64,000 nt of DNA from Schizochytrium sp. TIO01 (GCA_004764695.1 SMSO01000025.1:4380862-4444861), one strand, 5' to 3'. Shown: positions 20,763 to 58,400, numbered from the stretch's first letter. Made by a program: numbers and translations. The notes: generated by a model from the letters alone, not told the origin.

Positions 20763-22307
20763 CTATTCGTCTGCACTATTGAGGTTCTTGCTAAAGCTAA
20801 CAAGACCAATCTTCCGTCGCCGTGCATCCCAAACAGAAACATCCTCGCAGGTAGGTAGACCAGCTGCCTTGTCATAGTCAGACGAAACCTCGCCTTCCAC
20901 AAAAGTCAGAAATTCCTGCACAAGACGAATATCCTTAAACATAGTCGCCATCCGAGCAGCCCTCTCTGCCATGGTCATTTCAACAAACCTATCCCCAATC
21001 TCTACTCCACTAACTGGCGATTCTTCAAGTTCTCCTTGAGGGAAGTCTTCAAGACGCAGGTGCCGAAGGCCAAAGACGATATCGAGTGCTGTCCTAAGGG
21101 CTGCAATCTCACTACGTGGTGTTTTCCGACGGCGCAATCCAACGAGGTTGAGTCCTCTAAGCTTAGCACGGTTGCCTACAGCAAGTGCAAATGGCGGCAC
21201 ATGACGATCAACAGCGCTCGCACCGCCAATCATGGCAAGCCTACCGATGTTCACGTGCTGGCGGATAGTTGCCGCACCTCCAATGGTTGCAAACGCCCCA
21301 ACATGGACGTGTCCAGCAAGCTGTACCAAATTTGACAACACCACTCCAGATGCAAGCACGCAGTCATGGCCTACGTGGCATCCAGTTAGTAGAAGGCAAC
21401 CATCGCCAATAGCAGTAAGGCCTCCTCCGCCCGAAGAACCACCATTGACGGTGGCAAACTCACGCACGATCACTCCTGCACCAAGCTCGAGCCTTGAGTC
21501 CGAGTCAAACACGTCTTCCACAGATGTGCTCTCTAAATCACCAGCGTTGTTTTTTATTTTAGCAGTGTCAGTCAGCTCTTTTTGCGGTTCGCTTTGTTGC
21601 TTGCAGGAGTTTTCGTTTTGGAAATCTTCATAGTCTTTGTTATGAGCTTTGCGAATCTTACAAAATTGAGAATCATCGTGATCATCGACATTGCTGGGAC
21701 CTCCCGTGCATTGATCGTGAGAAAATTTCACATCAAAAGCGTTGGCCTCAAATAACGTTGAATGGATAGCTGTTTTGGAATGGAGAATCTCAGAGTCGAA
21801 GAGACCTTGATGAATTTTGGGTGCTTCAACCAGGTTAGCGGCAAGGTCTTCAGCGATATCAGCCTCAGAGGAAGGCCTAGACTTGGACGTTCGATTGTTT
21901 CTAATATGCTTCCTGTCTTGAGGAGGCCCGCCGACGACGGCAAAAGGATGAATCTCGCTGCCAGCACCTATGGATGTACATCCTGCGATGACAGCGTGAG
22001 GCCCTATTGAGACGCCAGCACCAAGTGAGACATGGGAACCAACAACTGCAAAGGCACCAACAGAGCTCCCAGGTCCGATTCGAGCGCCTGGTGAGACAAC
22101 TGCCGTTGGGTGCACGTAGTAGTTGCGAGCACTGGAGCTGAGGTGCCGCCCTGACGCATGCTGACAAATGCCGGTCCTGACGTTCATACCCAACAACTTA
22201 ACATTTGTCAACGGGAAAGGCGACCTGAGAAGTATCTCAGAGCAAGAGCATCCAGACTGATCTCTGAAGGCAAGCAAGCATCGCTTGGGCGCAATCATGG
22301 CGCGCAT
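20763..22307 (-). CDS. lpxA: Acyl-ACP--UDP-N-acetylglucosamine O-acyltransferase (LpxA-like), probable organellar presequence
   Basis: Hexapeptide left-handed beta-helix starting VHPTAVV; GGPPQD; REFATVNGG; HVGHDC (catalytic His region); LAGHV; VPPF; GLNLVGLRRR. The Arg/Ser-rich N-terminal extension ends RHLSS. Confidence 0.88.
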   Translation of the reverse strand: MRAMIAPKRCLLAFRDQSGCSCSEILLRSPFPLTNVKLLGMNVRTGICQHASGRHLSSSARNYYVHPTAVVSPGARIGPGSSVGAFAVVGSHVSLGAGVSIGPHAVIAGCTSIGAGSEIHPFAVVGGPPQDRKHIRNNRTSKSRPSSEADIAEDLAANLVEAPKIHQGLFDSEILHSKTAIHSTLFEANAFDVKFSHDQCTGGPSNVDDHDDSQFCKIRKAHNKDYEDFQNENSCKQQSEPQKELTDTAKIKNNAGDLESTSVEDVFDSDSRLELGAGVIVREFATVNGGSSGGGGLTAIGDGCLLLTGCHVGHDCVLASGVVLSNLVQLAGHVHVGAFATIGGAATIRQHVNIGRLAMIGGASAVDRHVPPFALAVGNRAKLRGLNLVGLRRRKTPRSEIAALRTALDIVFGLRHLRLEDFPQGELEESPVSGVEIGDRFVEMTMAERAARMATMFKDIRLVQEFLTFVEGEVSSDYDKAAGLPTCEDVSVWDARRRKIGLVSFSKNLNSADE

Positions 22308-22470
22308 GGGCAACTCGACTTGGGTCTACGCAGCTCTTTCTGACAATATTGGAGCATGAAAATAAATTCATGTGATAATTTCAGTTGAAATATTCGTCTG
22401 ATATTTTCAAATGAAAAAGATAATTTGGGTAGTACCCCAAGAAGAATTTCAAAGCAGCATCTTCTTGACG

Positions 22471-25785: not shown

Positions 25786-28700
25786 TTAAAAGGTAATGCC
25801 AGCATCATCCTCATCGTCATTGGCAACTAAATCGAGATAGTCCAGAGCGCTGGTGGAGGTTGGCTGAGACACATCAAGAGAAAAGTATTCCGAAAGAGCA
25901 GGCATGGACGCACTTGCCATACCACGCTTAGGCGGAAGGCTCGCCTGCGGTGGCATGGCAGTCATTTCTGGTCTACGAAGGTCCAAGTAAGACTGATGAT
26001 GCTTGGCAGCTGAAGCAGCAATCGCAGCAGCATGGCCCATATGACTATCAGCCTCATCTTCCGAGGTTGCACCATCAAAAGACTCACCTCGCTCCTCATG
26101 GGGCTCAATGTCGTCCATATCCTCAACTTTGTCCTCACGGATTGTAGTCACAGGTCCATGAGACTGAAAAGAATGCGAAGGCAGAGCTGTGTAAGACTCA
26201 TAGGTTCGGCGACTGCGGTCTTGCAAGTGAGGAGAGCTTGGACCCAACATGTCACCCATAGAACGAGAACCACGACTCTTGCTTGAGACTCTGGCCAAAA
26301 ACTCCAGTACACTCTGAACCTCCTCTACATCATTGACGAAGTACTGCGCCACAGATGGCTTCTCACCCACAACACAGGTAAACAAATCACCCTTCCATGG
26401 CTCGATTGGAGTTCTTGAGTGGTGACGCAAAAGAGGGTGCGGAGGCGGAGGCGAGTCCGTACCAATACTCGAGGTTGCGGCATCCTCTCCACCTTGTTTC
26501 TTATCAGAATCTTGTTGAGCATCATCCTGGTTGAAGCTAGAGCCACGCTCACGACCCAAGATGCTGTGCGCAAGCATTTGAATTGAAGAACCAAATACAG
26601 AGTCATTGCGAGTAAATTTACCAAGCAGATCCTCACGACCGTTCGCATGCAACTCGTGGAAAAACTCAAACATTGCCTCGTCAGCAATATCATCACCAAT
26701 ACACAAAACGAAGTCGGGCAAGTCGTCCGTAGCTCCATAGACCATGTCCAGAATGTGGGCTACTGCATTTCCCTTGTCGATACCTTGAGGGCACACTTCC
26801 ACATACCCCTTACCTGAGACGACCTCAATAGGAAAGGCCTTCAAAACACCATGCAAATGGTCCTGCAGCTCTGAAGCTTGCAATGCAGCAAACTCAGGTT
26901 CGGCGTCTCGAAACTGCCACACGATCGAAGAACCCTTGCGTTCAATGTATGTACCATCAGTACGCTGTGTGTACACATCCATGATCTGTTCACTGAGATC
27001 CATCCAGCTTGAATCAAAGACATCGGACAAAGTGATCCATTCCCGCATCAACGTATCCTGCACTCGGCGGAAATCAGCCCCGGTGCGACTCCGATGTGAG
27101 GGGCGCGTCTCTTGACTGTCTGAGCTCGAGCTACGCGCACGACGCCGACCCATCTGATGGCGAGGAGGCGCATGGAGCAAGTCACTTCCGGAAGTGCCTG
27201 AAACCAAGGGAGGTGTGACGGTGCTGCGCTGCTTTGGGTATATCTCCCCGGAGTCTTCTGACGCTGGAACAGATGCAGATGAGCGCATGCGATCCGGAAG
27301 GCTGTAGAAGCAGCCATGTTCTGCAGTTAAACCAATGTTCGGAATATCTGCAAAAGCAGCTTCTACCTCCTGACGCTCCCGACCTGACACAATAAACACA
27401 TTGTTACGTGGATCTTCCAGCAACATTTTCAGTGATCGAATCATGCCCGAGGCAGGCACAATGGCCTCGCCCTTGGGGCGGTAGCGGAACTCAAACTTGT
27501 GACGAAGGGTACTCTCGTCCACACCTTCCTGCGGAATTGCATCATCAGATACAGTCGTACCACCATAGTCTAGCACAATGAGTCGAGACTCTGCGGCACG
27601 GTAAGCATCCATCATTATGTCATCAGTGAGATGTTGGAAGTTCGGGCGGAATTCTACAGCACGGAATTGTAACCCAAGACCAAGGCCATCAGGAGTAAGG
27701 CCTTCATGCTTGCCCTCTGAAGACATTGGGCGGGCTGTCTTGATATCCGTTAGTACGCGCAAAGCCCACCCGGTCTCATCATGGTTTATAACATATCGAA
27801 GTGCCGCTGCATGCCGAGCTTGACGTTCCTCAGGATCCATGCTGAGAGCTGACTGTATAGATTCCACAACTTCGTTATCACGCCAAGGATTGCAGCGCAA
27901 GCTACCAGGAAGTACGCGAAAGGCAGCTGTGAATTCAGAGAGGACCAACGATGAGTGTGTGCGGATCTGACGAACCTCCTCACTGACCTCAGGGCTGTTT
28001 GCCAAGGCAGTCCAAGGCCCGCTCTTAAGGGTAGCACGCTCATCAGTAACTACGGTGTACTCAAAGGCACTCAAACCCAAACCAGAACGCAGAGGTGTAA
28101 TCATAAGGATATCAGCAATGGAAAATAAAGCCAGACGGTCTTCGAAACTAGACGAAGACCACTCCACTAGAACGACAGCCGGTCGCTTGCCAGGCGGGCG
28201 CGGAAAACTACGATTGATACGACGAGCAAGCTCACGGACAATATGCAATACCTCTCGAGATTCTTCTGACTCTTGCCGGGTGTGAACTAGCACTTGCAAA
28301 AGGCATAAACGATCTAGCCAAGGTGACTTTTTGCTCCGCTCCAGCTCAAGTAGCTTCTCATAAGACACCAGCTTGAAGTGAATGCCCCGTAAGAATTCAA
28401 TATCATCTAGACCCGCAATGATCACTTGATCGGCGTTGAGCCAATCTGTGTGACTACCGTGATTGGTTGTGGAAGAAGCTCCAGAGAAAGCTGCAGAGCC
28501 TTGCGCCGAGAGTTGCTGCCGCTGTGGATCTTGTGCAGACGAAGGAGGGAGCAAAGGAGGCTTGCCGTCTACAGGAACCTTTTCCTCGACGAACATAGTT
28601 TGCGAACCGCTTGGGGCGGGGTAAGGTACTATACAAGCTCGCAACATTGCGTATGCCTTGGCCGATACTGCGTCAGAACGAAGTTTGTTACGCACCATCG

Positions 28701-30174
28701 CAGCTTCAATGCCTCCATGACAAACCGTAATAAGCACACGGCGGCCTTGGTAGTCAACAGTGAGTACACCATGGCGGTCGTTTTCATTACCATCATGAGG
28801 AATTCCCAGAATCCGATGACAGCATGAAAGAAAGGGTCTTGCATACTCGTACAAGTGAAAACCGATCTGGTCAGCATTGAGCATCCCAATAAGGAGCTCA
28901 TCACGGACAGATAATGTACGAAAAATCTCTGACGAAGGAAATGGTGAGTGGATAAACAGTCCAATTGGCGGTTTGCGGCGCTTCAGGCGCCGGGCCAGCA
29001 TTGAAGGAAGTAAAAGCAGCTCATAACCGTGTACCCAAATAAGATCTGTGTCTTGATACTCTTCCACACAAATACCTAAAAAGGCCTGATTCACCTCTCG
29101 ATACGCTTGCCAGGAAGCCTCGTGCAGCTTAGCATTCCACCACCGAGTAGGAAGAGGACCATACACGTCAACCTGATGGTGAAAGAGTTTGCGGAGAGTA
29201 TCATAACAGAACAAATAATGAAGTCTAGCAATCTCTTCGTCAAGAAAAACAGGAACACAACGAAACCTTGAAAGAGCAGCACGAAGACCCGAACGTTCAT
29301 GGGGCTGAACAGGTGGCTCAATATTAGGGACACCAATGTACACAACGCGCATGTAATCTGCGGCTGACTTCTTCTTGCGCGAGAGCAGGGTTGACTCATT
29401 CCATTCAATGATCCAATCTTGTGCGCCAGATTCTGAATCTGAGCGCTCACGCGTATACTTGGTGTCAAGGTTAGAGTCTGAGGATCGAGAAGAACTCATA
29501 GAAGAAACTGACGTGGATAAGTTGGGCGATGGGGAAGGTCTGGAGAAGCTGCCGATGAATTCACTACGGGATGAATCACCTCTGCTTGTGCTAGGTGTGT
29601 CACCTTCGGGAGAAGATGGAGGTCTAATGTTACTGCGCTGAATTTTTACAGGCAGAAAATGGCTTACAACCATGACACCGTCTGTGGACTCCAAGTCCAG
29701 ACCTTTGCGTCGCTTCTCTCGGTGTGACATTCGCTCCTGGTTATCACTTGATTGTTGACGCGTAGGGAGCTTGTGCTGGGTGGATCGAAATCTTGAGGCA
29801 CTACTTTGGTCATCGTCTTCGTCACCGCCGTCGGTGCGATTATCCGTTCCCGGAATTTGCAAAATATCATTGATTGTGGTTGGGCTCTCTACAAAGAGTT
29901 TGCGCGACTCCCCGTCAGGAAGCTCCTCCCAGCGGGATAACTCGCCACCACTTAGAATGCAGTAGCGATATGAAATGGTCTGATCGGGTGGGAGTGGAAT
30001 GGGCTGCGCCGTATACCATTCGGGGAAAACGTCCGGATCTGTCACGAGCTGGACACCGTATCTATGGTCTCCAGATCCTAGTGCTGCAACATCACCCACT
30101 AAGCATATGGTCTCGCCACGTTCTAGTGGTGCAACCACATTGAAGCTTACACCGACAACGTCTCCACGACCCAT
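25786..30174 (-). CDS. CBM20 - trehalose-6-phosphate synthase (GT20) - trehalose phosphatase (HAD) fusion
   Basis: N-terminal CBM20 (LVGDVAALG, WY, YRY, WE); GT20 motifs VSHFLPV, IWVHGYELLLLP, FIHSPFPSSEIFR, LNADQIGFH, LSEF, NPW; HAD motifs LDYGGT, VSGR, AEHG, DKG, CIGDDIADE, VGEKPSVAQYF. Confidence 0.93.
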   Translation of the reverse strand: MGRGDVVGVSFNVVAPLERGETICLVGDVAALGSGDHRYGVQLVTDPDVFPEWYTAQPIPLPPDQTISYRYCILSGGELSRWEELPDGESRKLFVESPTTINDILQIPGTDNRTDGGDEDDDQSSASRFRSTQHKLPTRQQSSDNQERMSHREKRRKGLDLESTDGVMVVSHFLPVKIQRSNIRPPSSPEGDTPSTSRGDSSRSEFIGSFSRPSPSPNLSTSVSSMSSSRSSDSNLDTKYTRERSDSESGAQDWIIEWNESTLLSRKKKSAADYMRVVYIGVPNIEPPVQPHERSGLRAALSRFRCVPVFLDEEIARLHYLFCYDTLRKLFHHQVDVYGPLPTRWWNAKLHEASWQAYREVNQAFLGICVEEYQDTDLIWVHGYELLLLPSMLARRLKRRKPPIGLFIHSPFPSSEIFRTLSVRDELLIGMLNADQIGFHLYEYARPFLSCCHRILGIPHDGNENDRHGVLTVDYQGRRVLITVCHGGIEAAMVRNKLRSDAVSAKAYAMLRACIVPYPAPSGSQTMFVEEKVPVDGKPPLLPPSSAQDPQRQQLSAQGSAAFSGASSTTNHGSHTDWLNADQVIIAGLDDIEFLRGIHFKLVSYEKLLELERSKKSPWLDRLCLLQVLVHTRQESEESREVLHIVRELARRINRSFPRPPGKRPAVVLVEWSSSSFEDRLALFSIADILMITPLRSGLGLSAFEYTVVTDERATLKSGPWTALANSPEVSEEVRQIRTHSSLVLSEFTAAFRVLPGSLRCNPWRDNEVVESIQSALSMDPEERQARHAAALRYVINHDETGWALRVLTDIKTARPMSSEGKHEGLTPDGLGLGLQFRAVEFRPNFQHLTDDIMMDAYRAAESRLIVLDYGGTTVSDDAIPQEGVDESTLRHKFEFRYRPKGEAIVPASGMIRSLKMLLEDPRNNVFIVSGRERQEVEAAFADIPNIGLTAEHGCFYSLPDRMRSSASVPASEDSGEIYPKQRSTVTPPLVSGTSGSDLLHAPPRHQMGRRRARSSSSDSQETRPSHRSRTGADFRRVQDTLMREWITLSDVFDSSWMDLSEQIMDVYTQRTDGTYIERKGSSIVWQFRDAEPEFAALQASELQDHLHGVLKAFPIEVVSGKGYVEVCPQGIDKGNAVAHILDMVYGATDDLPDFVLCIGDDIADEAMFEFFHELHANGREDLLGKFTRNDSVFGSSIQMLAHSILGRERGSSFNQDDAQQDSDKKQGGEDAATSSIGTDSPPPPHPLLRHHSRTPIEPWKGDLFTCVVGEKPSVAQYFVNDVEEVQSVLEFLARVSSKSRGSRSMGDMLGPSSPHLQDRSRRTYESYTALPSHSFQSHGPVTTIREDKVEDMDDIEPHEERGESFDGATSEDEADSHMGHAAAIAASAAKHHQSYLDLRRPEMTAMPPQASLPPKRGMASASMPALSEYFSLDVSQPTSTSALDYLDLVANDDEDDAGITF

Positions 30175-48630: not shown

Positions 48631-49454
48631 TAGGAAACTGGTTTTGATTTAACCTAGCATTCTAATTCCGATTCCGCTGTTTTGAATATAATATTTTACC
48701 GAAACGGTAATATTTACTCTGCTGACAGATTCTGACAGCAGAGTAATTGTGAGCTACTTTCTTACTTATCCAATAATAACACTGATTCGTCAATTCCAAG
48801 GCGCACCTCGGACTAGTGCACGACCATATCAGTTGATAACCTTTTTCTTCTCGTTTATAATACTTCATAATATTCAATCAAGACCACTAGTAACTTACGA
48901 CAGGGTGCAGTCCTCTACTGGCACTCATGAGTTGATGAACCAAAAGCTCATTACGCACCAAAAGACGCACAGAGCTATGCATAGCACTTGTGGTAACAAA
49001 GAAACTAAACATTATATCATACTTTTGATGGAATCTAGAAACTGTCTCATGATACCCTCTCCCATGACAATGATGAATGATATGTACTAGACAACTCCGC
49101 TTAAGCTAAAGTCACCAACCTCGGCGATCTGAGATTTTTATCCATGTAAAGGTCAAATATATCCCATATCGTAGTTGTTTGCACCTTTACTCATTTACCA
49201 GCTATATTAGATAGTACGCTTCAGATAATAGAGAATGTTTTGAAGACAAGAATGCAAAACCTCAACAACCTTTTCTGTTTAAATAATTGTCTTCATCTAA
49301 TTTGTATAACTAGGCGTGTCATTAGAATCAGGTACTCTGGAACAAACAATCGTAGTTGCTTTAAATTTGATTTTATATGCTGTATACGATAGCAACGCAC
49401 CCATTCCATTACCTTAGTATGAGTACATAACCTGAAGCACTTTTTTAAATTGGC

Positions 49455-52400
49455 CTAGTTGTTGTCACACAAAGTGATACTCGCAATGGCCTCACTACCA
49501 TGATACTGCAGTGATGCGTTCCTAGAATGGTATCGCAAGCCGATGATAATAATTTCTTCAACTAAAAGCTCATCACTCAAAATTGCGCGGTTCTGATAAT
49601 TGTTTAGTGCAAGATTTGTAATAACCTTGTATGCCAAAATCTGTACTTTCTCACTTGCAAGATGATTTTTCATAGCGGCAACAATGTCTTTGCCAACACC
49701 AAGCTCTTGACACAGAATCACACGGTTGCGTTCGCCTGATGCAAGATTCCGAATGGCACCGCAGGCAGAATCTTGCACTTCTTCGTTTGCAGGATGAGCA
49801 CGCATAGCTGCAACGATGTCTTTGCCAACACCAAGCTCTTGACACAGAATCACACGGTTGCGTTCGTCTGATGCAAGATTCCGAATGGCACCGCAGGCAG
49901 AATCTTGCACTTTTTCGTTTCTAGGATGAGCACGCATAGCTGCAACAATTTCTTTGCCAACACCAAGCTCTTGACACAGAATCACACGGTTGCGTTCGCC
50001 TGATGCAAGATTCCGAATGGCACCGCAGGCAGAATCTTGCACTTCTTCGTTTGCAGGATGAGCACGCATAGCTGCAACGATGTCTTTGCCAACACCAAGC
50101 TCTTGACACAGAATCACACGGTTGCGAGCATTCCCTGATGCAAGATTCCGAATGGCACCGCATGCAGAATCTTGCACTTTTTCGTTTCTAGGATGAGCAC
50201 GCATAGCTGCAACAATTTCTTTGCCAACACCAAGCTCTTGACACAGAATCACACCGTTGCGATTATCTTCGAATGCAAGATTTCGAATGGCACCGCAGGC
50301 AGAATATTGCACTTCTTCGTTTGCAGGATGAGCACGCATAGCTGCAACGATGTCTTTGCCAACACCAAGCTCTTGACACAGAATCACACGGTTGCGATTG
50401 TCTGATGCAAGGTTCCAAATGGCATCGCAAGCATAACTTTGCACGTTTTCGTTTGCAGGATGAGCACGCATAGCTGCAACGATGTCTTTGCCAACACCAA
50501 GCTCTTGACACAGAATCACACGGTTGCGTTCGCCTGATGCAAGATTCCGAATGGCACCGCAGGCAGAATATTGCACTTTTTCGTTTGCAGGATGAGCACG
50601 CATAGCTGCAACAATTTCTTTGCCAACACCAAGCTCTTGACACAGAATCACACGGTTGCGATTATTTTCGAATGCAAGATTCCGAATGGCACCGCAGGCA
50701 GAATCTTGCACTTTTTCGTTTGCAGGATGAGCACGCATAGCTGCAACGATGTCTTTGCCGACACCAAGCTCTTGACACAGAATCACACGGTTGCGATTAT
50801 TATCGAATGCAAGATTCCGAATGGCACTGCAGGCAGAATCTTGCACTTTTTCGTTTGCAGGATGAGCACGCATAGCTGCAACGATGTCTTTGCCAACACC
50901 AAGCTCTTGACACAGAATCACACGGTTGCGATCGTCTAATGCAAAATTCGAAATGGCACCGCAGGCAGAATATTGCACTTTTTCGTTTGTAGGGTGAGCA
51001 CGCATAGCTGCAACGATGTCTTTGCCAACACCAAGCTCTTGACACAGAATCACACGGTTGCGATCGTCGAATGCAAGATTCCCAATGGCACTGCAGGCAG
51101 AATATTGCACTTCTTCGTTTGCAGGATGAGCACGCATAGCTGCAACGATGTCTTTGCCAACACCAAGCTCTTGACACAGAATCACACGGTAGCGATCCTC
51201 TGATGCAAGATTCCGAATGGCACCGCAGGCAGAATCTTGCACTTCTTCGTTTGCACGATGAGCACGTATAGCTGCAACGATGTCTTTGCCAACACCAATC
51301 TCTTGACACAGAATCACACGGTTGCGATCTTCGAATGCAAGATTCCCAATGGCACTGCAGGCAGAATCTTGCACTTTTTCGTTTGCAGGATGAGCACGCA
51401 TAGCTGCAACGATGTCTTTGCCAACACCAAGCTCTTGACACAGAATCACACGGTTGCGATCGTCTAATGCAAGATTCCAAATGGCACCGCAGGCAGAATC
51501 TTGCACATTTTCGTTTGCAGAATGAGCACGCATAGCTGCAACGATGTCTTTGCCAACACCAAGCTCTTGACACAGAATCACACGGTTGCGATCGTCTAAT
51601 GCAAGATTCCGAATGGCACCGCAGGCAGAACCTTGCACTTCTTCGTTTGCAGGATGAGCACGCATAGCTGCAACGATGTCTTTGCCAACACCAAGCTCTT
51701 GACACAGAATCACACGGTTGCGATCGTCTAATGCAAGATTCCCAATGGCACTGCAGGCAGAATCTTGCACATTTTCGTTTGCAGGATGAGCACGCATAGC
51801 TGCAACGATGTCTTTGCCAACACCAAGCTCTTGACACAGAATCACACGGTTGCGATCGTCTAATGCAAGATGCTGAATGGCACCGCAGGCAGAATATTGC
51901 ACTTTTTCGTTTGCAGGATGAGCACGCATAGCTGCAACGATGTCTTTGCCAACACCAAGCTCTTGACACAGAATCACACGGTTGCGATTATCTTCGAATG
52001 CAAGAATCCGAATGGCATCGCAGGCAGAATCTTGCACTTTTTCGTTTGCAGGATGAGCACGCATAGCTGCAACGATGTCTTTGCCAACACCAAGCTCTTG
52101 ACACAGAATCACACGGTTGCGATTATCTTCGAATGCAAGATGCTGAATGGCATCGCAGGCAGAATATTGCACTTTTTCGTTTGCAGGATGAGCACGCATA
52201 GCTGCAACGATGTCTTTGCCAACACCAAGCTCTTGACACAGAATCACACGGTTGCGATTATCTTCGAATGCAAGATTCGAAATGGCACCGCAGGCAGAAT
52301 ATTGCACTTTTTCGTTTGCAGGATGAGCACGCATAGCTGCAACGATGTCTTTGCCAGCACCAAGCTCTTGACACAGAATCACACGGTTGCGTTCGTCTGA

Positions 52401-55400
52401 TGCAAGATTCCGAATGGCACCGCAGGCAGAATCTTGCACTTCTTCGTTTGCAGGATGAGCACGCATAGCTGCAACGATGTCTTTGCCAACACCAAGCTCT
52501 TGACACAGAATCACACGGTTGCGTTCGTCTGATGCAAGAATCCGAATGGCATCGCAGGCAGAATCTTGCACTTTTTCGTTTGCAGGATGAGCACGCATAG
52601 CTGCAACGATGTCTTTGCCAACACCAAGCTCTTGACACAGAATCACACGGTTGCGATTATCTTCGAATGCAAGATGCTGAATGGCATCGCAGGCAGAATA
52701 TTGCGCTTTTTCGTTTGCAGGATGAGCACGCATAGCTGCAACGATGTCTTTGCCAACACCAAGCTCTTGACACAGAATCACACGGTTGCGATTATCTTCG
52801 AATGCAAGATTCGAAATGGCACCGCAGGCAGAATATTGCACTTTTTCGTTTGCAGGATGAGCACGCATAGCTGCAACGATGTCTTTGCCAGCACCAAGCT
52901 CTTGACACAGAATCACACGGTTGCGTTCGTCTGATGCAAGATTCAGAATGGCACCGCAGGCAGAATCTTGCACTTCTTCGTTTGCAGGATGAGCACGCAT
53001 AGCTGCAACGATGTCTTTGCCAACACCAAGCTCTTGACACAGAATCACACGGTTGCGTTCGTCTGATGCAAGATTCCGAATGGCACCGCAGGCAGAATCT
53101 TGCACTTCTTCGTTTGTAGGATGAGCACGCATAGCTGCAACGATGTCTTTGCCAACGCCAAGCTCTTGACACAGAAACACACAGTTGCGATCGTCGAATG
53201 CAAGATTCCCAATGGCACCGCAGGCAGAATCTTGCACTTTTTCGTTTGCAGGATGAGCACGCATAGCTGCAACGATGTCTTTGCCAACACCAAGCTCTTG
53301 ACACAGAATCACACGGTTGCGTTCGTCTGATGCAAGATTCGAAATGGCACCGCAGGCAGAATATTGCACTTCTTCGTTTGCAGGATGAGCACGCATAGCT
53401 GCAACGATGTCTTTGCCAACACCAAGCTCTTTACACAGAATCACATCGTTGCGATTATCTCCGAATGCAAGATTCCGAATGGCACTGCAGGCAGCATATT
53501 GCACTTCTTCGTTTGCAGGATGAGCACGCATAGCTGCAACGATGTCTTTGCCAACACTAAGCTCTTGACACAGAATCACACAGTTGCGATCGTCTTGTGC
53601 AAGATTCCCAATGGCACCGCAGGCAGAATTTTGCACTTTTTCGTTTGCAGGATGAGCACGCATAGCTGCAACGATGTCTTTGCCAACACCAAGCTCTTGA
53701 CACAGAATCACACGGTTGCGATCGTCTGATGCAAGATTCCAAATGGCACCACAGGCAGAATATTGCACTTTTTCGTTTGCAGGATGAGCACGCATAGCTG
53801 CAACGATGTCTTTGCCAACACCAAGCTCTTGACACAGAATCACACGGTTGCGAGCATTGCCTAATACAAGGTTCCGAATGGCATCGCAGGCAGAATTTTG
53901 CACTTTTTCGTTTGCAGGATGAGCACGCATAGCTGCAACGATGTCTTTGCCAACGCCAAGCTCTTGACACAGAATCGCACGGTTGCGATTATTTTTGAAT
54001 GCAAGATTCCGAATGGCACCGCAGGCAGAATATTGCACTTTTTCGTTTGCAGGATGAGCACGCATAGCTGCAACGATGTCTTTGCCAACGCCAAGCTCTT
54101 GACACAGAATCGCACGGTTGCGATTATTTTTGAATGCAAGATTCCGAATGGCACCGCAGGCAGAATCTTGCACTTCTTCGTTTGCAGGATGAGCACGCAT
54201 AGCTGCAACGATGTCTTTGCCAACACCAAGCTCTTGACACAGAATCACACGGTTGCGATTGTCTGATGCAAGCCTCGCAATGGCACCGCAGGCAGAATCT
54301 TGTACCTTTTCGTTTGCAGGATGAGCACGCATAGCTGCAACGATTGCTTTTCCTGTAAGGAAATCTAGTTGATCTATATTGGAGATAGAAATGGCATTCT
54401 GAGTCTTACGTTGTGTATCGACAGACGATAATTGAATCAATGGGTTGACGGAATGTGTATGCATGGTCGTTTTTGTTTCTTGACAGATATCAGGATCTTG
54501 GATGAAGGCTCTGCCGCAGCTCGCAGTATCACTGGCGAGACTTGCTAAAGTAAGACAGGATTGGATCTGAACATCTGCGTTCAATTCGTGAGCTTGCATG
54601 GTGGCACATATCTCGAAATGAATATCACGTTTGCTTTCAAAAATCTGGCGCTTCTGTTCCATAAGTATTGGTATTCTTAGGGTCTTGCATGCTGCAATTT
54701 GAACTTCGGCATTAGATCGATGAGAACGCATTGTTTTAGTGATGTGCGTCCCTAAATTTAAGGGTTCCCATATATTCTGTTCAATATTATCATTAAGAGC
54801 CAAGGCATGCAGTGTCTCTAATGCTACATGCTGTATAAATGCATCAGTATCGTTAGATTGCATAAATGAAACAATCTCTTCACCAATATTTGAATCCTGC
54901 CTGAAAAGGGCACATGCTTCGTTATCTCTTTCAGTAATGATGGACAAAGTTTTACAAACCTCCTTGAACACCATCTTATTTGCTCTGTTTGTGCGCAAAA
55001 TTGGAATGATTTCATTAGCAAAGCCAGCTGTACGGCAAACGTCGGCATTCTCAATGAGACTTTGTAAGGCCCGGCATGCCCATTTCAGGACTCTAACGTG
55101 GCGTCGATGCAAATGTATTACCTTGACAATCTCATTAGAAAGTTCTTTTCTTACGTTTGCAACAGGCAAATGCACCTCATTGGAGAAAATCTTACACAGA
55201 CATTTGCATGCATGTCTTTGTAAGTTATCATTGGCTGAGTGTCTCCGCATAGCTTCTAGTAGAACCCGACCACTAGTTGGATTCTGCATCATTTCTGCGC
55301 ACTTATCAGCATCCTTCGAAAGTCTGCAAAGTAACTGGCACGCCTGCTCCTGAATCTTCTCATTCGACGAGTTTGTCAGCATACTAGAGTATATGGCGTC

Positions 55401-58400
55401 AAGAACATCTCTGTCGAAACTACCAAATGCAAGGCTTCCCAGCGCAAAAAGAGCTGATTCTTGTACATGTTGATTATTGCAATGCACCTTTATGGTAGAT
55501 GCAATTTCTTTATAGACATTGTACTTCTGAACTAGAGGTGCCTGAAATTTATTATCGAGGGCGAGTGACCCTACTAATCCGAGAATAAGAGATTGTACCA
55601 CGGGGTGGCCTGGGTGAGCTAACATTGCAGCTATCAAAGCATTGACTAAATTAAGCTCAGAGATGATGAGACTTTCCTTAATCTTGTCTATATCAATGAT
55701 TTTCTGGAGCGCACCACAAGCATGTTCCAGTACAGTAGTATTGTCGAGATGCAAAGACATGATCTTCGTAATTTCATCAACTATATTCCACTCGAGGTGG
55801 GTGATATTGTCGACGCAGTCTTCTCCAATAAGATTTCTGAGCAAACCGCACGCTTGTTCTTGTAGATTTGCGTCAGTTGGATGCGAACTTACAGCGAATA
55901 GAATTCGGGTAAAGGTGGTTTTCTCGTTCCCAATAGTTTCCTTATTCGAGGTATGACCTGCGCTTAAATTCCACAAAGCTTTGCATGCCAATTCTTGCAC
56001 TCTAACATCAAGCGGATGAGCACTCATCGAACTGATTACCTCCTTATGAACCTGGTGTTCATGGACAAGAGTAGATTGTGTTTGCTTGTCTAGTGCAAGA
56101 CTAGCTAAAGCTCCACATGCCTGTTCCTGCAATCTTGCATTGAGGCGGTGTTTACACATAGCTGAGGTAATGACAACTAAATCTAATTCTTGCCCAACAA
56201 TCCGTTTGTTACGAAGATTGTTGCATACAAGGTTCCATATAGCTCTGCAACCCCATTCTTGTACCTTCACACTATAATTGTGTCTTTGCATAGCTTGAAG
56301 AATCAAGCTGCCAGCATTGAGTCCTTGGCCAAGCCTCCGTTTGGTACTATCAATGACAGCAAGGCTCATTAAAGCCGCACATGCCCATTTTTGTACTCCC
56401 TCTTCGGCTGGATGCATGGACATGGCGACTAGTATTTTATCACTGATATCCAGGACCTCGCCTAGGAACTCGCAATTCGTCTTGGAAGACTTTGCAAACG
56501 AAACTATAGTAGCACACGCAGCCTCTTGAAGCCTTGCGTCTTCAGGAAACTCATTCATAAGACTCGCAACTGACCTTCCTAGTCCATAGCATTGTACTGC
56601 CTCCTGCGCATAGCGGAATTCGATCTTACCTGTGAAAGAATACCGGATCGCCCACAAAGTCTCTGTAAAGACTGCCACATCAACATTCTCAGCATCTAGG
56701 AGTTGCTTGACTACAGGATATATTGCGCATGAACACATTTGTTTTGTCATAAGGACAGCAGCTTCAACGCCTTGGCCACCAAGAAACCCCTCTTGCAATG
56801 TCGCAAGACTTTGAAGAAGTGCATTCTTAGTTTCGCTCTCACTAGCATCAATATTCTGAATGACATTGGGGCTGAATTTAGGCTTTGTATTTTCAGAAGG
56901 CAGGTCATACCATTCTTCATGAAAGAGTTTAGATATCTGTGCAACTGGTCCAATTGCGTGCGCGCAACACTCTAGGCCCTGCACGATACTTTCCACCGTA
57001 GGACGCTTCTTAGCGCAAGGTAGCCAACACCGTTCTATTAAGCGCCGAATACAAGCCTTGGGGCTCAGGCTCGCAGAGAATATGAGTGGACGCTCTCCAT
57101 TTAAAATTTTCCTCGTGAGAGCTTTAGGAGAGTGGAAGGACTCCTCAAACGGGGGTTTCTCATGAAAAATCTCCCAAAGAACCACTCCAAAGGAGTACAC
57201 ATCAGCTTTAGTAGTCCATATAGCTGCTACTTCCAGAGTCTCGGGTGCTCTGTAATAGAGTGCACTGAGTTCGGAAGTCTCCAAATTTACTGCTGATAAG
57301 TCTTGAAGCCCAAAGTTTGAAAGTTTAACGGATTTAAGATCCTTCGTGATCAAAACATTCCTAGGGCTTAGGTCACTATGGATAATACCTTGAGAGTGTA
57401 AATATGCAAGCCCACTCGCAATTCCACGAGTCAGTGCTTGTTTAGACTCCAAGTCCAACCGCGGTGTACCGTGAGAGTATGATCTAGGATATAAAAAATC
57501 ATTGAGGTTTGAATCCCAGTGTTCCATGACGAGATAAAAGCTGCCTTCAAGAGTGGCTGAGCCAAGGATAGACAAAACATTTTTATGGTGTAGTTTCTGC
57601 CAATGCTTTGCTTCTGCAATCAATGCTTTTCTTGCCTCAAGCGGGCAACACCCTTGGTTAAAGCAGGTTCTTTTCATGGCAACACTGGAGGTCAAACTTT
57701 CCTCCTTCGTTAAGGCACCCGAAAGAATTTGTCCAAACTTGCCTTCCCATAGAATACGCTCAGGTTTCTGAAGATGTAATTCACTTGAGCTCAGCGTTCC
57801 CAATTCCAATTCTTGCGTACTGTAGATTTGTGCCATAAAAGTGAGCATGGCTTGGTGAGGCTGTTTCTCGTCAAAGCAGCTTTCCAAAATATCAACTAGG
57901 TCACCTTCTATAGGTTGCTTTTCCAGAAAACGCGAGAGGATATCAATCTCCTTTTCGCTGACATTTATTACTTGATGTTGAGCCTTTTTGAAAACTTCTT
58001 GAAGCTGTAGTCGGTCTTGCTTCATATCAAGGATACCTTGTTCTTCAAGCGTACCCAGGAGGTTATCCATCTCAAGTGATTCAAGACGGCATTTATTAAG
58101 TGCCATTTCTAACTGCGTCAATGCTGTGCAAATCGCTTCTCTAGCGCGGTGACTCTCCACCAACTTTAAAATAACCAAAGCAGTTTCACTTGTTTCATCT
58201 CCAAAGAACGGCTGCAAGATCGTAATCGTCTTCCTCAGTGCTGATTCCAAGGCAAGAAGATCAACGTCCTCGATATCCGTACCATCCTCAAAGAGCTTCA
58301 CAATCTCACCAAGAACCTCGCGCATATACTTTACACTGAGGCGGCATACCTGAGGCTCCTTGAGCAGGTTAGCAGCGACATGTGCAAGTTGCAGCACATG

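Follow-up and report, generated by a model that had tools for sequence, protein, structure and literature searches.

A hypervariable array of near-identical, predicted armadillo repeats in a kinase-like protein of the thraustochytrid Schizochytrium sp. TIO01

Here we describe a gene of Schizochytrium sp. TIO01, a marine thraustochytrid protist, which ends in 34 near-identical armadillo (ARM) repeats that differ almost only at positions corresponding to the groove face on which such repeats bind peptides. This looks like a fast-diversifying recognition module on a protein with a kinase-like domain and, potentially, an MLKL-like N-terminus rather than like a TALE-type code. The gene lies on the minus strand of a 64,000-nucleotide stretch of the genome (GCA_004764695.1, SMSO01000025.1:4380862-4444861; referred to as the window, to which all positions refer) and consists of one intron-free open reading frame (ORF) of 3024 amino acids (49455-58529). 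A first-pass annotation made from the sequence alone had described 35 units, almost identical in DNA including silent sites, with amino-acid changes recurring at a few codons. We could confirm this observation, whereas its interpretation as a natural programmable binder is only partly supported by our analyses. A literature search revealed no publication on this gene family.

First, we determined the architecture of the predicted protein. The N-terminal domain (aa 1-255, 57765-58529) is all-helical in an AF2 model (pLDDT 73.5, pTM 0.71). It is followed by a kinase-like domain (aa 258-518, 56976-57758; Pfam PK_Tyr_Ser-Thr, E 4e-41), whose best match in the PDB is RIPK1 (E 1.4e-29), followed by FGFR3 (E 8e-23), and whose catalytic motifs are degenerate, i.e. 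HSDLSPRN instead of HRDLKxxN and NFG instead of DFG. An alignment with the paralogues showed that their motifs range from intact HRD/DFG to fully degenerate. Next come about nine divergent, LRRK2-type ARM repeats that are not homogenised (aa 600-1382, 54384-56732; Pfam ARM_LRRK2, E 2.5e-24), and then the near-identical array; a profile HMM built from the units finds 45 ARM hits in the ORF, 36 of which are located in the array. The protein ends in a 45-aa tail, a further degenerate ARM-like cap, and the stop codon (49455-49592). Within residues 1-1392 Pfam finds only the kinase and ARM domains, and a central NACHT or NB-ARC domain as in NLR/STAND receptors was not detected; an nSTAND3 score in the C-terminal part, which is below threshold per stretch, is one of many spurious hits inflated by the repeats.

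A tandem repeat search (TRF) identified a single array at 49671-54344 with a period of 132 bp, 35.1 copies and 92% matches. Cutting by unit resulted in 34 full near-identical units of 44 or 45 aa (132/135 bp; units 2-35, 49725-54251), preceded by a hybrid first unit with a divergent helix 1 followed by array-like sequence (54252-54383) and followed by a degenerate last unit, unit 36, of which the first 16 codons are array-like and the rest is diverged (49593-49724). The 34 units show a mean DNA identity of 93.5% (range 86-100%), a mean pairwise amino-acid identity of 0.86 over 1509 aa and a silent-site diversity (piS) of 0.037. All residue alternatives listed in the first-pass annotation are present, namely K19/E12/N3 at column 26, D17/Y13/N2/G1/S1 at column 29, G23/D6/S5 at column 33, R18/G5/S4/W3/Q3/L1 at column 36 (A occurs only in unit 1), N29/H3/I2 at column 37 (R occurs only in unit 1), F14/S13/L6/Q1 at column 40 and D17/E9/G6/K2 at column 41, as well as the one-codon indel at column 43, with the extra codon present in 13 of 34 units. 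In addition, column 42 (D/E/N), which had not been listed, is equally variable. Together, these eight codons hold 71% of the pairwise nucleotide differences, although they represent only 18% of the codons.

The ARM identity of the repeats is supported by sequence and by structure prediction. The array matches the Pfam profiles Arm (E 8.8e-36) and ARM_LRRK2 (E 1.1e-50), and PDB sequence hits include LRRK2 (E 1.5e-17), Vac8, catenins and APC. An AF2 model of seven units has a pLDDT of 96.8 with three helices in every unit, and its best Foldseek hits are complexes of designed armadillo repeat proteins (dArmRP) with peptides (5mfe, 5aei and 5mfc; TM 0.74-0.86) and APC-ARM. Next, we examined the register of the variable columns. 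The ARM consensus used in the first-pass annotation aligns best, without gaps, at unit column 24 (BLOSUM62 score 28, next best 14), and Pfam Arm positions 25-41 map to columns 24-40. In the model, helix 3 spans columns 25-39, and columns 26, 29, 33, 36 and 37 cluster on one helical face with a resultant length of 0.80, which is matched by only 0.8% of all 5-subsets of the helix. Columns 40-43, in contrast, are located in the loop after helix 3, not on the helix face to which columns 40 and 41 had been assigned. The variable codons are in register with dArmRP pocket positions 29, 30 and 33 (PMC11228518, PMC4756613), of which positions 30 and 33 are exposed peptide-site residues, while 27, 32, 34 and 38 are buried (PMC4756613); here, columns 27, 32, 34 and 38 are essentially invariant, with at most one variant unit each. 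Asn37, which forms a ladder in peptide-binding ARM grooves, is present in 29 of 34 units, but Trp33 is replaced by G/D/S. The assignment to the groove is inferred from register and helical periodicity, not from side chains placed on three-dimensional coordinates.

Concerted evolution is visible in the array. DNA identity of the framework is 95% within the array but only 64-68% to other arrays, and the array contains a higher-order duplication (51998-53051), in which units 15-18 (51998-52517) and units 11-14 (52532-53051) form a 520-bp direct repeat, the last unit being chimeric at its loop. A DNA search of the own genome reported 100% identity over 520 bp, whereas the codon table shows two differences, which are located at column 36 of units 11/15 and column 27 of units 13/17. 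It is conceivable that length or order of the array result from misassembly of a shorter repeat, since copy number and order rest on the assembly alone, and short-read contigs of four runs stop at about 49713 and 54316. However, we consider this very unlikely: the genome is assembled into 37 contigs for 64 Mb, from which we infer a long-read assembly; 32 of the 34 units are distinct in DNA, so that long reads can order them; unit-specific short contigs match exactly in runs of four different studies, with word depths mostly above that of the upstream flank, as expected for multi-copy sequence; the reading frame is intact through all units; and sister arrays of 4 to 31 units exist in the family loci that we retrieved.

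Next, we asked whether the variable codons are under diversifying selection, as the first-pass annotation had proposed. Non-silent diversity (piN) at the eight codons is 0.28, compared to 0.022 elsewhere. The codon site model M2a was preferred over M1a (2dlnL 69.4) with an omega of about 10 for 25% of the sites, and columns 1, 23, 26, 29, 33, 36, 40, 41, 42 and 43 had a probability above 0.95; however, this test assumes a single tree and is inflated by recombination. We also used minimum-state counts, which gave 30 non-silent and 3 silent changes at nine groove codons. A neutral hot-spot simulation with free recombination expects 8-10 silent changes at the diversity-matched theta of 1.5-2 per codon, and the probability of observing three or fewer is 0.004-0.04 over all settings where it could be estimated (0.004-0.02 at the matched ones). 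Support for an omega above 1 is moderate under the most conservative tests, with a binomial P of 0.02 for this array and a pooled minimum-state omega of 1.27 (P = 0.027) over ten arrays, which are not independent.

Alternatively, the array might be a neutral, recently amplified coding minisatellite, in which the variable codons are simply the least constrained or most mutable ones and which has no recognition role. In line with this, the piN(top 8)/piS ratio of about 8 is reached in 18-20% of neutral simulations once the post-hoc choice of codons is allowed for, framework omega within the array is about 0.8-0.9, so recent changes are barely filtered, and several family members are broken. Nevertheless, we consider this explanation unlikely. 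Apart from the deficit of silent changes and the M2a result, a 15-fold mutational hot spot would have to follow alpha-helical periodicity, and a frame of 9 kb is intact. Furthermore, the exposed helix-2 columns 12, 16, 20 and 23, which are among the most variable in old diverged arrays of the family, are nearly invariant in this young array. Finally, the same columns vary in separately homogenised arrays and in another genus: other high-identity arrays have columns 29, 30, 33, 36, 37, 40 and 42 as their most variable ones (rho 0.41-0.61), with a piN(groove)/piS of 1.4-2.7 and the framework at 0.28-0.50, and the Hondaea proteins P0070 and P0073 show the same pattern.

We then tested whether the variable residues could represent a modular code, as the first-pass annotation had suggested by analogy to TALE/PPR codes. 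In such a code, each unit would read one or two monomers of a linear peptide or nucleic acid through a small set of specificity residues, so that the unit order would spell a target sequence. The regular solenoid closest to designed modular peptide binders, the mostly retained Asn37 ladder and the location of the variable residues at positions randomised in designed pockets would be compatible with such a reading. However, we found 30 different combinations of variable residues in 34 units, the commonest of which occurs twice, i.e. there is no recurrent small alphabet, and the array would specify about 68 ligand residues without any candidate target being known. A TALE/PPR-like code is therefore not supported, and we regard this possibility as remote. 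A nucleic-acid ligand is likewise unlikely, because the variable residues are net acidic (88 D/E against 39 K/R) and the pI of the array is 6.2. In contrast, the comparison to HET-E WD40 repeats, which the first-pass annotation had also drawn, is apt with regard to concerted evolution plus diversifying selection (PMC4986451).

The gene belongs to a family of about 19 paralogues in this genome, which are arranged in tandem clusters and some of which are broken; a transposase-like ORF is located next to the gene. The family appears to be restricted to thraustochytrids, since a search with the N-terminal domain returned 12 hits among 1.84 billion representative sequences. Residues 40-186 of this domain (57972-58412) superpose on the four-helix bundle plus brace of MLKL, and the top two hits of a VIA-align comparison with 48,161 chains are MLKL structures (4btf_A, Z 12.4; 6ux8_A, Z 11.8), although Z values below 13 lie in a range that helical bundles can reach by chance, Foldseek was not significant (E of about 1), and Pfam MLKL_N, albeit the commonest weak hit among the paralogues (3 of 12, best E 0.011), remains below threshold.

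From our sequence analyses we conclude that the array is the C-terminal part of a large protein of a thraustochytrid-restricted family with a helical N-terminal domain, a kinase or pseudokinase and ARM repeats, that its units are kept almost identical by recent unequal crossing-over or gene conversion within the array, that amino-acid differences accumulate on the exposed face of helix 3 and the subsequent loop, i.e. the surface that armadillo proteins use to bind extended peptides, with more non-silent relative to silent changes than neutral evolution allows, and that the same columns vary in other arrays of the family. What we infer beyond this, including any ligand binding and expression of the protein, is that the array represents a diversifying recognition surface, a germline library of peptide-binding pockets that can be reshuffled by repeat exchange, in which Asn37 would hold a ligand backbone and columns 26, 29, 33, 36 and 40-42 would read side chains. 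We consider this the most likely explanation, with moderate confidence, although 34 units are far more than any known single peptide ligand needs. More speculatively, ligand binding would be passed through the RIPK-like pseudokinase to the MLKL-like N-terminal bundle, which would make the protein a one-chain, NLR-free sensor and executioner for non-self recognition or regulated cell death; this role rests on analogy only. The array could instead belong to a housekeeping scaffold or regulatory protein that binds endogenous partners, for example substrates or regulators of the family's kinases or cytoskeletal or membrane proteins, with the variable positions tuning paralogue-specific partner choice and without a role in non-self recognition or cell death. 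The closest sequence relatives of the repeats, the ARM domains of LRRK2, Vac8, catenins and APC, all bind cellular partners, some paralogues keep intact kinase motifs, and the MLKL-like reading of the N-terminus is below formal thresholds. However, hypervariability within an array with an omega above 1 is not expected for a fixed cellular partner, the family is lineage-restricted, and it is tandemly clustered with pseudogenes, which is the pattern of birth-and-death receptor families, so that we regard this alternative as rather unlikely.

Among known systems, the highly conserved WD40, ANK and TPR/HEAT repeats of fungal NLRs (HET-E, HET-D, HET-R, NWD family; Paoletti 2007, Dyrka 2014, PMC4986451) share repeats of at least 85% identity within one gene (over at least 100 aa), concerted evolution by repeat shuffling, positive selection at a few positions per repeat that map to the concave binding surface (here inferred), clustering and repeat exchange among family members, and the attachment to a cell-death or signalling N-terminal domain, which is putative here. 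However, the repeats are of the armadillo type, which that survey did not report, a RIPK-like (pseudo)kinase takes the place of the NOD domain, and the organism is a stramenopile protist and not a fungus. The dArmRPs (YIIIMnAII) have the same predicted fold, a run of near-identical internal modules and the Asn37 ladder, which is mostly retained here, and natural variation falls at the helix-3 positions that engineers randomise to create side-chain pockets (29, 30, 33 and neighbours), but the units described here are natural, comprise 44/45 instead of 42 aa, carry G/D/S instead of Trp at position 33 and number 34 rather than 4-7. The zinc-finger minisatellite array of PRDM9 also consists of tandem coding units nearly identical in DNA, silent sites included, with variation confined to ligand-contact residues (here inferred) and concerted evolution combined with positive selection; its C2H2 fingers, however, read DNA by a known code, whereas the fold here is ARM, the ligand is probably a peptide and no code is evident. 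TALE, PPR and PUF repeats likewise form solenoids of tandem helical repeats with a few specificity positions per repeat (here putative), but use a small alphabet of residue pairs with a proven 1:1 map to nucleotides. With the MLKL/RIPK necroptosis module, including plant MLKLs, the protein shares the order of helical bundle and brace, both putative here, and kinase-like domain as well as degenerate catalytic motifs as in pseudokinases, but sequence similarity of the N-terminus is below threshold, an ARM region of roughly 2400 aa follows the kinase, and no RHIM or known upstream activator was found. Finally, the ARM domains of LRRK2, Vac8, beta-catenin, APC and importin-alpha share the three-helix unit and the groove formed by helix 3, which are predicted here, but their repeats, of which there are at most about 10-14, are divergent from one another and do not form hypervariable arrays.

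Tandem Repeats Finder reported a single array at window position 49671-54344, with a period of 132 bp, 35.1 copies and 92% matches, which lies inside one open reading frame of 3024 codons on the minus strand (49455-58529) without any stop or frameshift. Pfam identified a protein kinase domain at residues 258-518, followed by LRRK2-type ARM repeats and strong Arm/ARM_LRRK2 matches in the repeated part. Many other Pfam hits in the repeated part had no significant single stretch and represent score inflation by repetition. Cutting the protein at the conserved IVAAMR anchor yielded a hybrid first unit, 34 near-identical units of 44 or 45 residues (units 2-35, window 49725-54251), a degenerate unit 36 and a 45-residue tail. 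The 34 units are on average 93.5% identical in DNA (86-100%), and 32 of them are distinct. Nei-Gojobori diversity is 0.037 at silent sites, whereas at non-silent sites it is 0.28 in eight codons (26, 29, 33, 36, 37, 40, 41 and 42) and 0.022 in the other 36 codons; these eight codons hold 71% of all pairwise nucleotide differences.

The first-pass annotation had described near-identical armadillo units whose amino-acid changes recur at a few codons on one face of helix 3, and this observation is confirmed. Every residue alternative that it listed is present, and the one-codon indel (column 43) occurs in 13 units, while column 42, which it did not list, is also hypervariable. Its register is right as well, since its armadillo consensus string aligns best, without gaps, at column 24 (score 28 against 14 for the next offset), and Pfam Arm positions 25-41 map to columns 24-40. 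An AlphaFold2 model of units 2-8 (mean pLDDT 96.8, pTM 0.93) predicts three helices per unit, with H1 at columns 43-7, H2 at columns 10-20 and H3 at columns 25-39. Columns 26, 29, 33, 36 and 37 therefore lie on predicted helix 3, where they cluster on one face (mean resultant 0.80), and only 0.8% of all five-position subsets of the helix are as clustered. One correction is needed, however, since three of the variable columns and the indel (columns 40-43) are located in the loop that follows helix 3 and not on the helix.

The best structural matches of this model in the PDB are designed armadillo repeat proteins (dArmRP) with bound (KR)n/(RR)n peptides (5mfe, 5aei, 5mfc; TM 0.74-0.86, rmsd about 3 Å over about 300 columns) and APC-ARM. 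In the published designs, positions 30 and 33 are exposed peptide-site residues, positions 27, 32, 34 and 38 are buried, and pockets are built from residues 29, 30 and 33 of adjacent repeats (PMC4756613, PMC11228518). In the array investigated here, columns 27, 32, 34 and 38 are essentially invariant, with at most one variant unit each. The assignment of the variable sites to the groove is based on secondary structure, register and these published dArmRP positions rather than on three-dimensional coordinates of the model.

Next, we investigated whether this pattern reflects selection. A codon site model that we implemented, using a FastTree topology, F3x4 frequencies and scaled branch lengths, gave lnL values of -783.6 for M1a and -748.9 for M2a (2dlnL = 69.4, P about 1e-15), with omega2 of about 10 for 25% of sites. 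Sites with a posterior above 0.95 are 1, 23, 26, 29, 33, 36, 40, 41, 42 and 43, and thus do not include column 37. Since this test assumes one tree and is inflated by recombination, we performed controls that do not need a tree. The ratio of piN in the top eight codons to piS is about 8, but neutral simulations in which every codon has its own coalescent tree and the eight most variable codons are picked afterwards reach this value in 18-20% of runs. We therefore rejected this ratio as sufficient proof of selection and used a calibrated count of silent changes instead. Counting the minimum number of changes per column, which is valid under any genealogy, gave 30 non-silent and 3 silent changes at nine groove codons, whereas neutral evolution at these codons, with mutation rates raised to match their diversity (theta 1.5-2 per codon, about 15-fold background), gives 8-10 silent changes. 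P(S <= 3) is 0.004-0.02 at those rates and 0.004-0.04 over all settings where it could be estimated, and a simple binomial test gives P = 0.02.

As a control for tolerance, we considered the exposed helix-2 columns 12, 16, 20 and 23, which are among the most variable in old, diverged arrays of the same family and hence tolerate change, but which are almost invariant in this young array. We also considered mutational targeting, either DGR-like or by a hot spot, and rejected it, since the substitutions are not base-specific, a hot spot would have to follow helix periodicity, and this explanation also fails the silent-change test. Taken together with the helical periodicity, these results make a neutral or hot-spot explanation unlikely, although it is not excluded beyond about the 1% level on this array alone.

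To place the gene in the context of its family, we searched for relatives. A protein search with the 3024-aa protein returned only kinase-domain relatives, owing to the length window of the search, whereas a 1304-aa paralogue used as query retrieved the family, including proteins of the thraustochytrid Hondaea fermentalgiana (41-54% identity), which are the named relatives and whose arrays show the same pattern. One Hondaea database protein annotated as a mitochondrial dicarboxylate/tricarboxylate carrier carries the N-terminal domain and kinase of this family (46% identity over 53% of the query) and is probably a fused gene model. The N-terminal domain has only 12 matches among 1.84 billion representative proteins. 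The genome of origin (64 Mb, 37 contigs) holds about 19 loci with the same N-terminal domain plus kinase at 29-40% identity, which sit in tandem clusters on the contigs designated here C30, C33 and C34. Some members are broken by stops or frameshifts, as in birth-and-death families, and some paralogues (loci L034, L035 and L037) start just before the kinase domain and lack the N-terminal helical domain in the open frame, which indicates that domain loss or shuffling occurs within the family.

At least ten of these loci carry their own 132-bp arrays of 4 to 31 units. In those arrays the most variable columns are again 29, 30, 33, 36, 37, 40 and 42 (Spearman 0.41-0.61 with the window array), piN at the groove set is 1.4-2.7 times piS, and framework piN/piS is 0.28-0.50. 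Pooled minimum-state counts gave omega 1.27 at groove codons (P = 0.027) and 0.59 in the framework (P = 2e-9). However, the ten paralogue arrays cannot be treated as independent replicates, since those on C30 and C31 share 82-94% framework DNA identity with each other, almost as much as within arrays, which suggests exchange or recent common origin. The window array (0.95 within, 0.64-0.68 to all others) and the C34 array are separate lineages, so that there are about three independent lineages, plus Hondaea. Two family members 5.3 kb apart on C30 (loci L023 and L031; 181583-183329 and 186881-188627) carry 14-unit arrays with identical statistics and identical unit sequences, which represents a very recent tandem duplication of the whole gene. 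In contrast, the 31-unit array of locus L025 (C34, 4354929-4359020) is split into two ORFs, and the array of locus L021 (C30, 7260668-7262397) is scattered over several reading frames; both are probable pseudogenes or contain assembly indels.

Public sequencing reads were used to examine whether the array itself could be an assembly product. Twenty public runs from eight studies hold most of the sequence words of the gene, and contigs of four runs from four studies were aligned to 49300-55200 (5901 nucleotides). Both flanks are covered at 99% or better, but the long contigs end at about 49713 and 54316 and none spans the array. Many contigs of 60-120 bp match individual unit variants exactly, and their word depths are mostly above that of the upstream (right-hand) flank. 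This supports a real multi-copy array, but neither a particular number or order of units nor transcription. One contig of run X1, one of the runs examined, joins 54316 to 52819, skipping 1496 bases with 32 other letters between, which could be a graph artefact in a repeat or a shorter array variant in that sample. All four runs differ from the assembly in the same way at 49404-49531, with T>G at 49531, which by codon arithmetic changes Tyr3000 to Ser in the C-terminal tail, and small indels at 49404-49427, just downstream of the stop; either this is a strain difference or the assembly has small errors here.

The gene sits next to mobile-element remains (59715-61871 and 62371-63387, both on the minus strand), including a 718-aa ORF with a weak Plavaka-transposase match (E 3.3e-6) that lies 1.2 kb upstream of the gene. 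Elsewhere in the window, a 1462-aa ORF (25786-30174, minus strand) fuses a CBM20 starch-binding domain to trehalose-6-phosphate synthase and trehalose phosphatase domains, and another ORF (20763-22313, minus strand) has hexapeptide-repeat and LpxA-type (UDP-GlcNAc O-acyltransferase domain 2) matches in a eukaryotic genome.

The kinase domain is closest to RIPK1 among solved structures (E 1.4e-29; the next is FGFR3 at 8e-23). In this protein the motifs read HSDLSPRN and NFG, with the VAIK lysine kept, while paralogues range from intact HRD/DFG to fully degenerate. The N-terminal 255 residues are predicted to fold into a helical bundle (pLDDT 73.5, pTM 0.71). Foldseek found nothing significant for this model, although MLKL executioner domains are three of its top five rows. 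Only an exhaustive VIA-align search ranked MLKL first and second of 48,161 chains, with 4btf_A (Z 12.4, 123 residues, model 40-186 on MLKL 2-161) and 6ux8_A (Z 11.8), whereas AtMLKL3, Rx-CC, NRG1 CC-R and HET-S N-terminal domains rank lower. Pfam MLKL_N is the commonest weak hit among paralogues (3 of 12, best E 0.011). Since such Z values can arise by chance for helical bundles, the similarity to MLKL is suggestive and not shown.

From these results we conclude that repeated unequal crossing-over or gene conversion keeps the units alike, as is also apparent from a 520-bp four-unit block that is duplicated with two differences and a chimeric last unit, and that non-silent variants persist on the groove face. 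These points rest directly on the analysis, whereas the function of the array, including any ligand binding, is inferred. In this view the array is a library of peptide-binding pockets, in which Asn37, kept in 29 of 34 units, fits backbone binding as in importin-alpha and dArmRP. The variable residues are net acidic (88 D/E against 39 K/R) and the array has a pI of 6.2, which argues against nucleic acid and for basic or mixed peptide ligands. The interpretation given in the first-pass annotation is thus only partly supported: its analogy to HET-E repeats, with concerted evolution plus diversifying selection, is in line with our results, but a nucleic-acid ligand, which it had left open beside an extended peptide, is judged unlikely from charge, and a TALE/PPR-type code is rejected, since with 30 different residue combinations in 34 units there is no small alphabet. 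Neighbouring variable columns are linked (36-37, 40-43), as expected if units are exchanged as blocks, and the array behaves like a hypervariable paratope.

More speculatively, ligand binding would act through the pseudokinase on the MLKL-like bundle. Taken furthest, thraustochytrids would carry a previously undescribed class of innate recognition receptor, in which a reshufflable armadillo-repeat library replaces the LRR, WD40 or TPR sensor, and an MLKL-like bundle plus RIPK-like pseudokinase replaces the NOD and effector of NLRs, resulting in a one-chain, NLR-free sensor and executioner for viruses or non-self. The evidence does not exclude this reading, but we consider it doubtful at present. 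If the interpretation holds, it would widen the known design space of innate immune or cell-death receptors beyond NLRs, push MLKL/RIPK-like modules into a deep eukaryotic lineage, and provide dozens of naturally selected armadillo pockets as starting points for binder design. Fragments of 6-8 units should fold well (pLDDT 97). Full-text literature searches found no report of hypervariable armadillo arrays or of thraustochytrid MLKL-like proteins.

Near-identical repeats with diversifying selection on the binding surface are the signature of rapidly adapting recognition receptors, and the evolutionary regime of the array matches that of the highly conserved WD40, ANK and TPR/HEAT repeats of fungal NLRs, in which selected positions also map to the concave binding face (PMC4986451), as well as that of the PRDM9 zinc-finger array. 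The protein is not an NLR, because Pfam finds no NOD domain. The regime is already known from other repeat types, whereas its occurrence on armadillo repeats is unusual, here in a stramenopile protist and attached to a putatively necroptosis-type helical bundle and a RIPK-like pseudokinase. Armadillo is the scaffold that protein engineers chose for programmable peptide binders, and the array is of interest both for evolutionary immunology and as a natural counterpart of these engineered modular binders.
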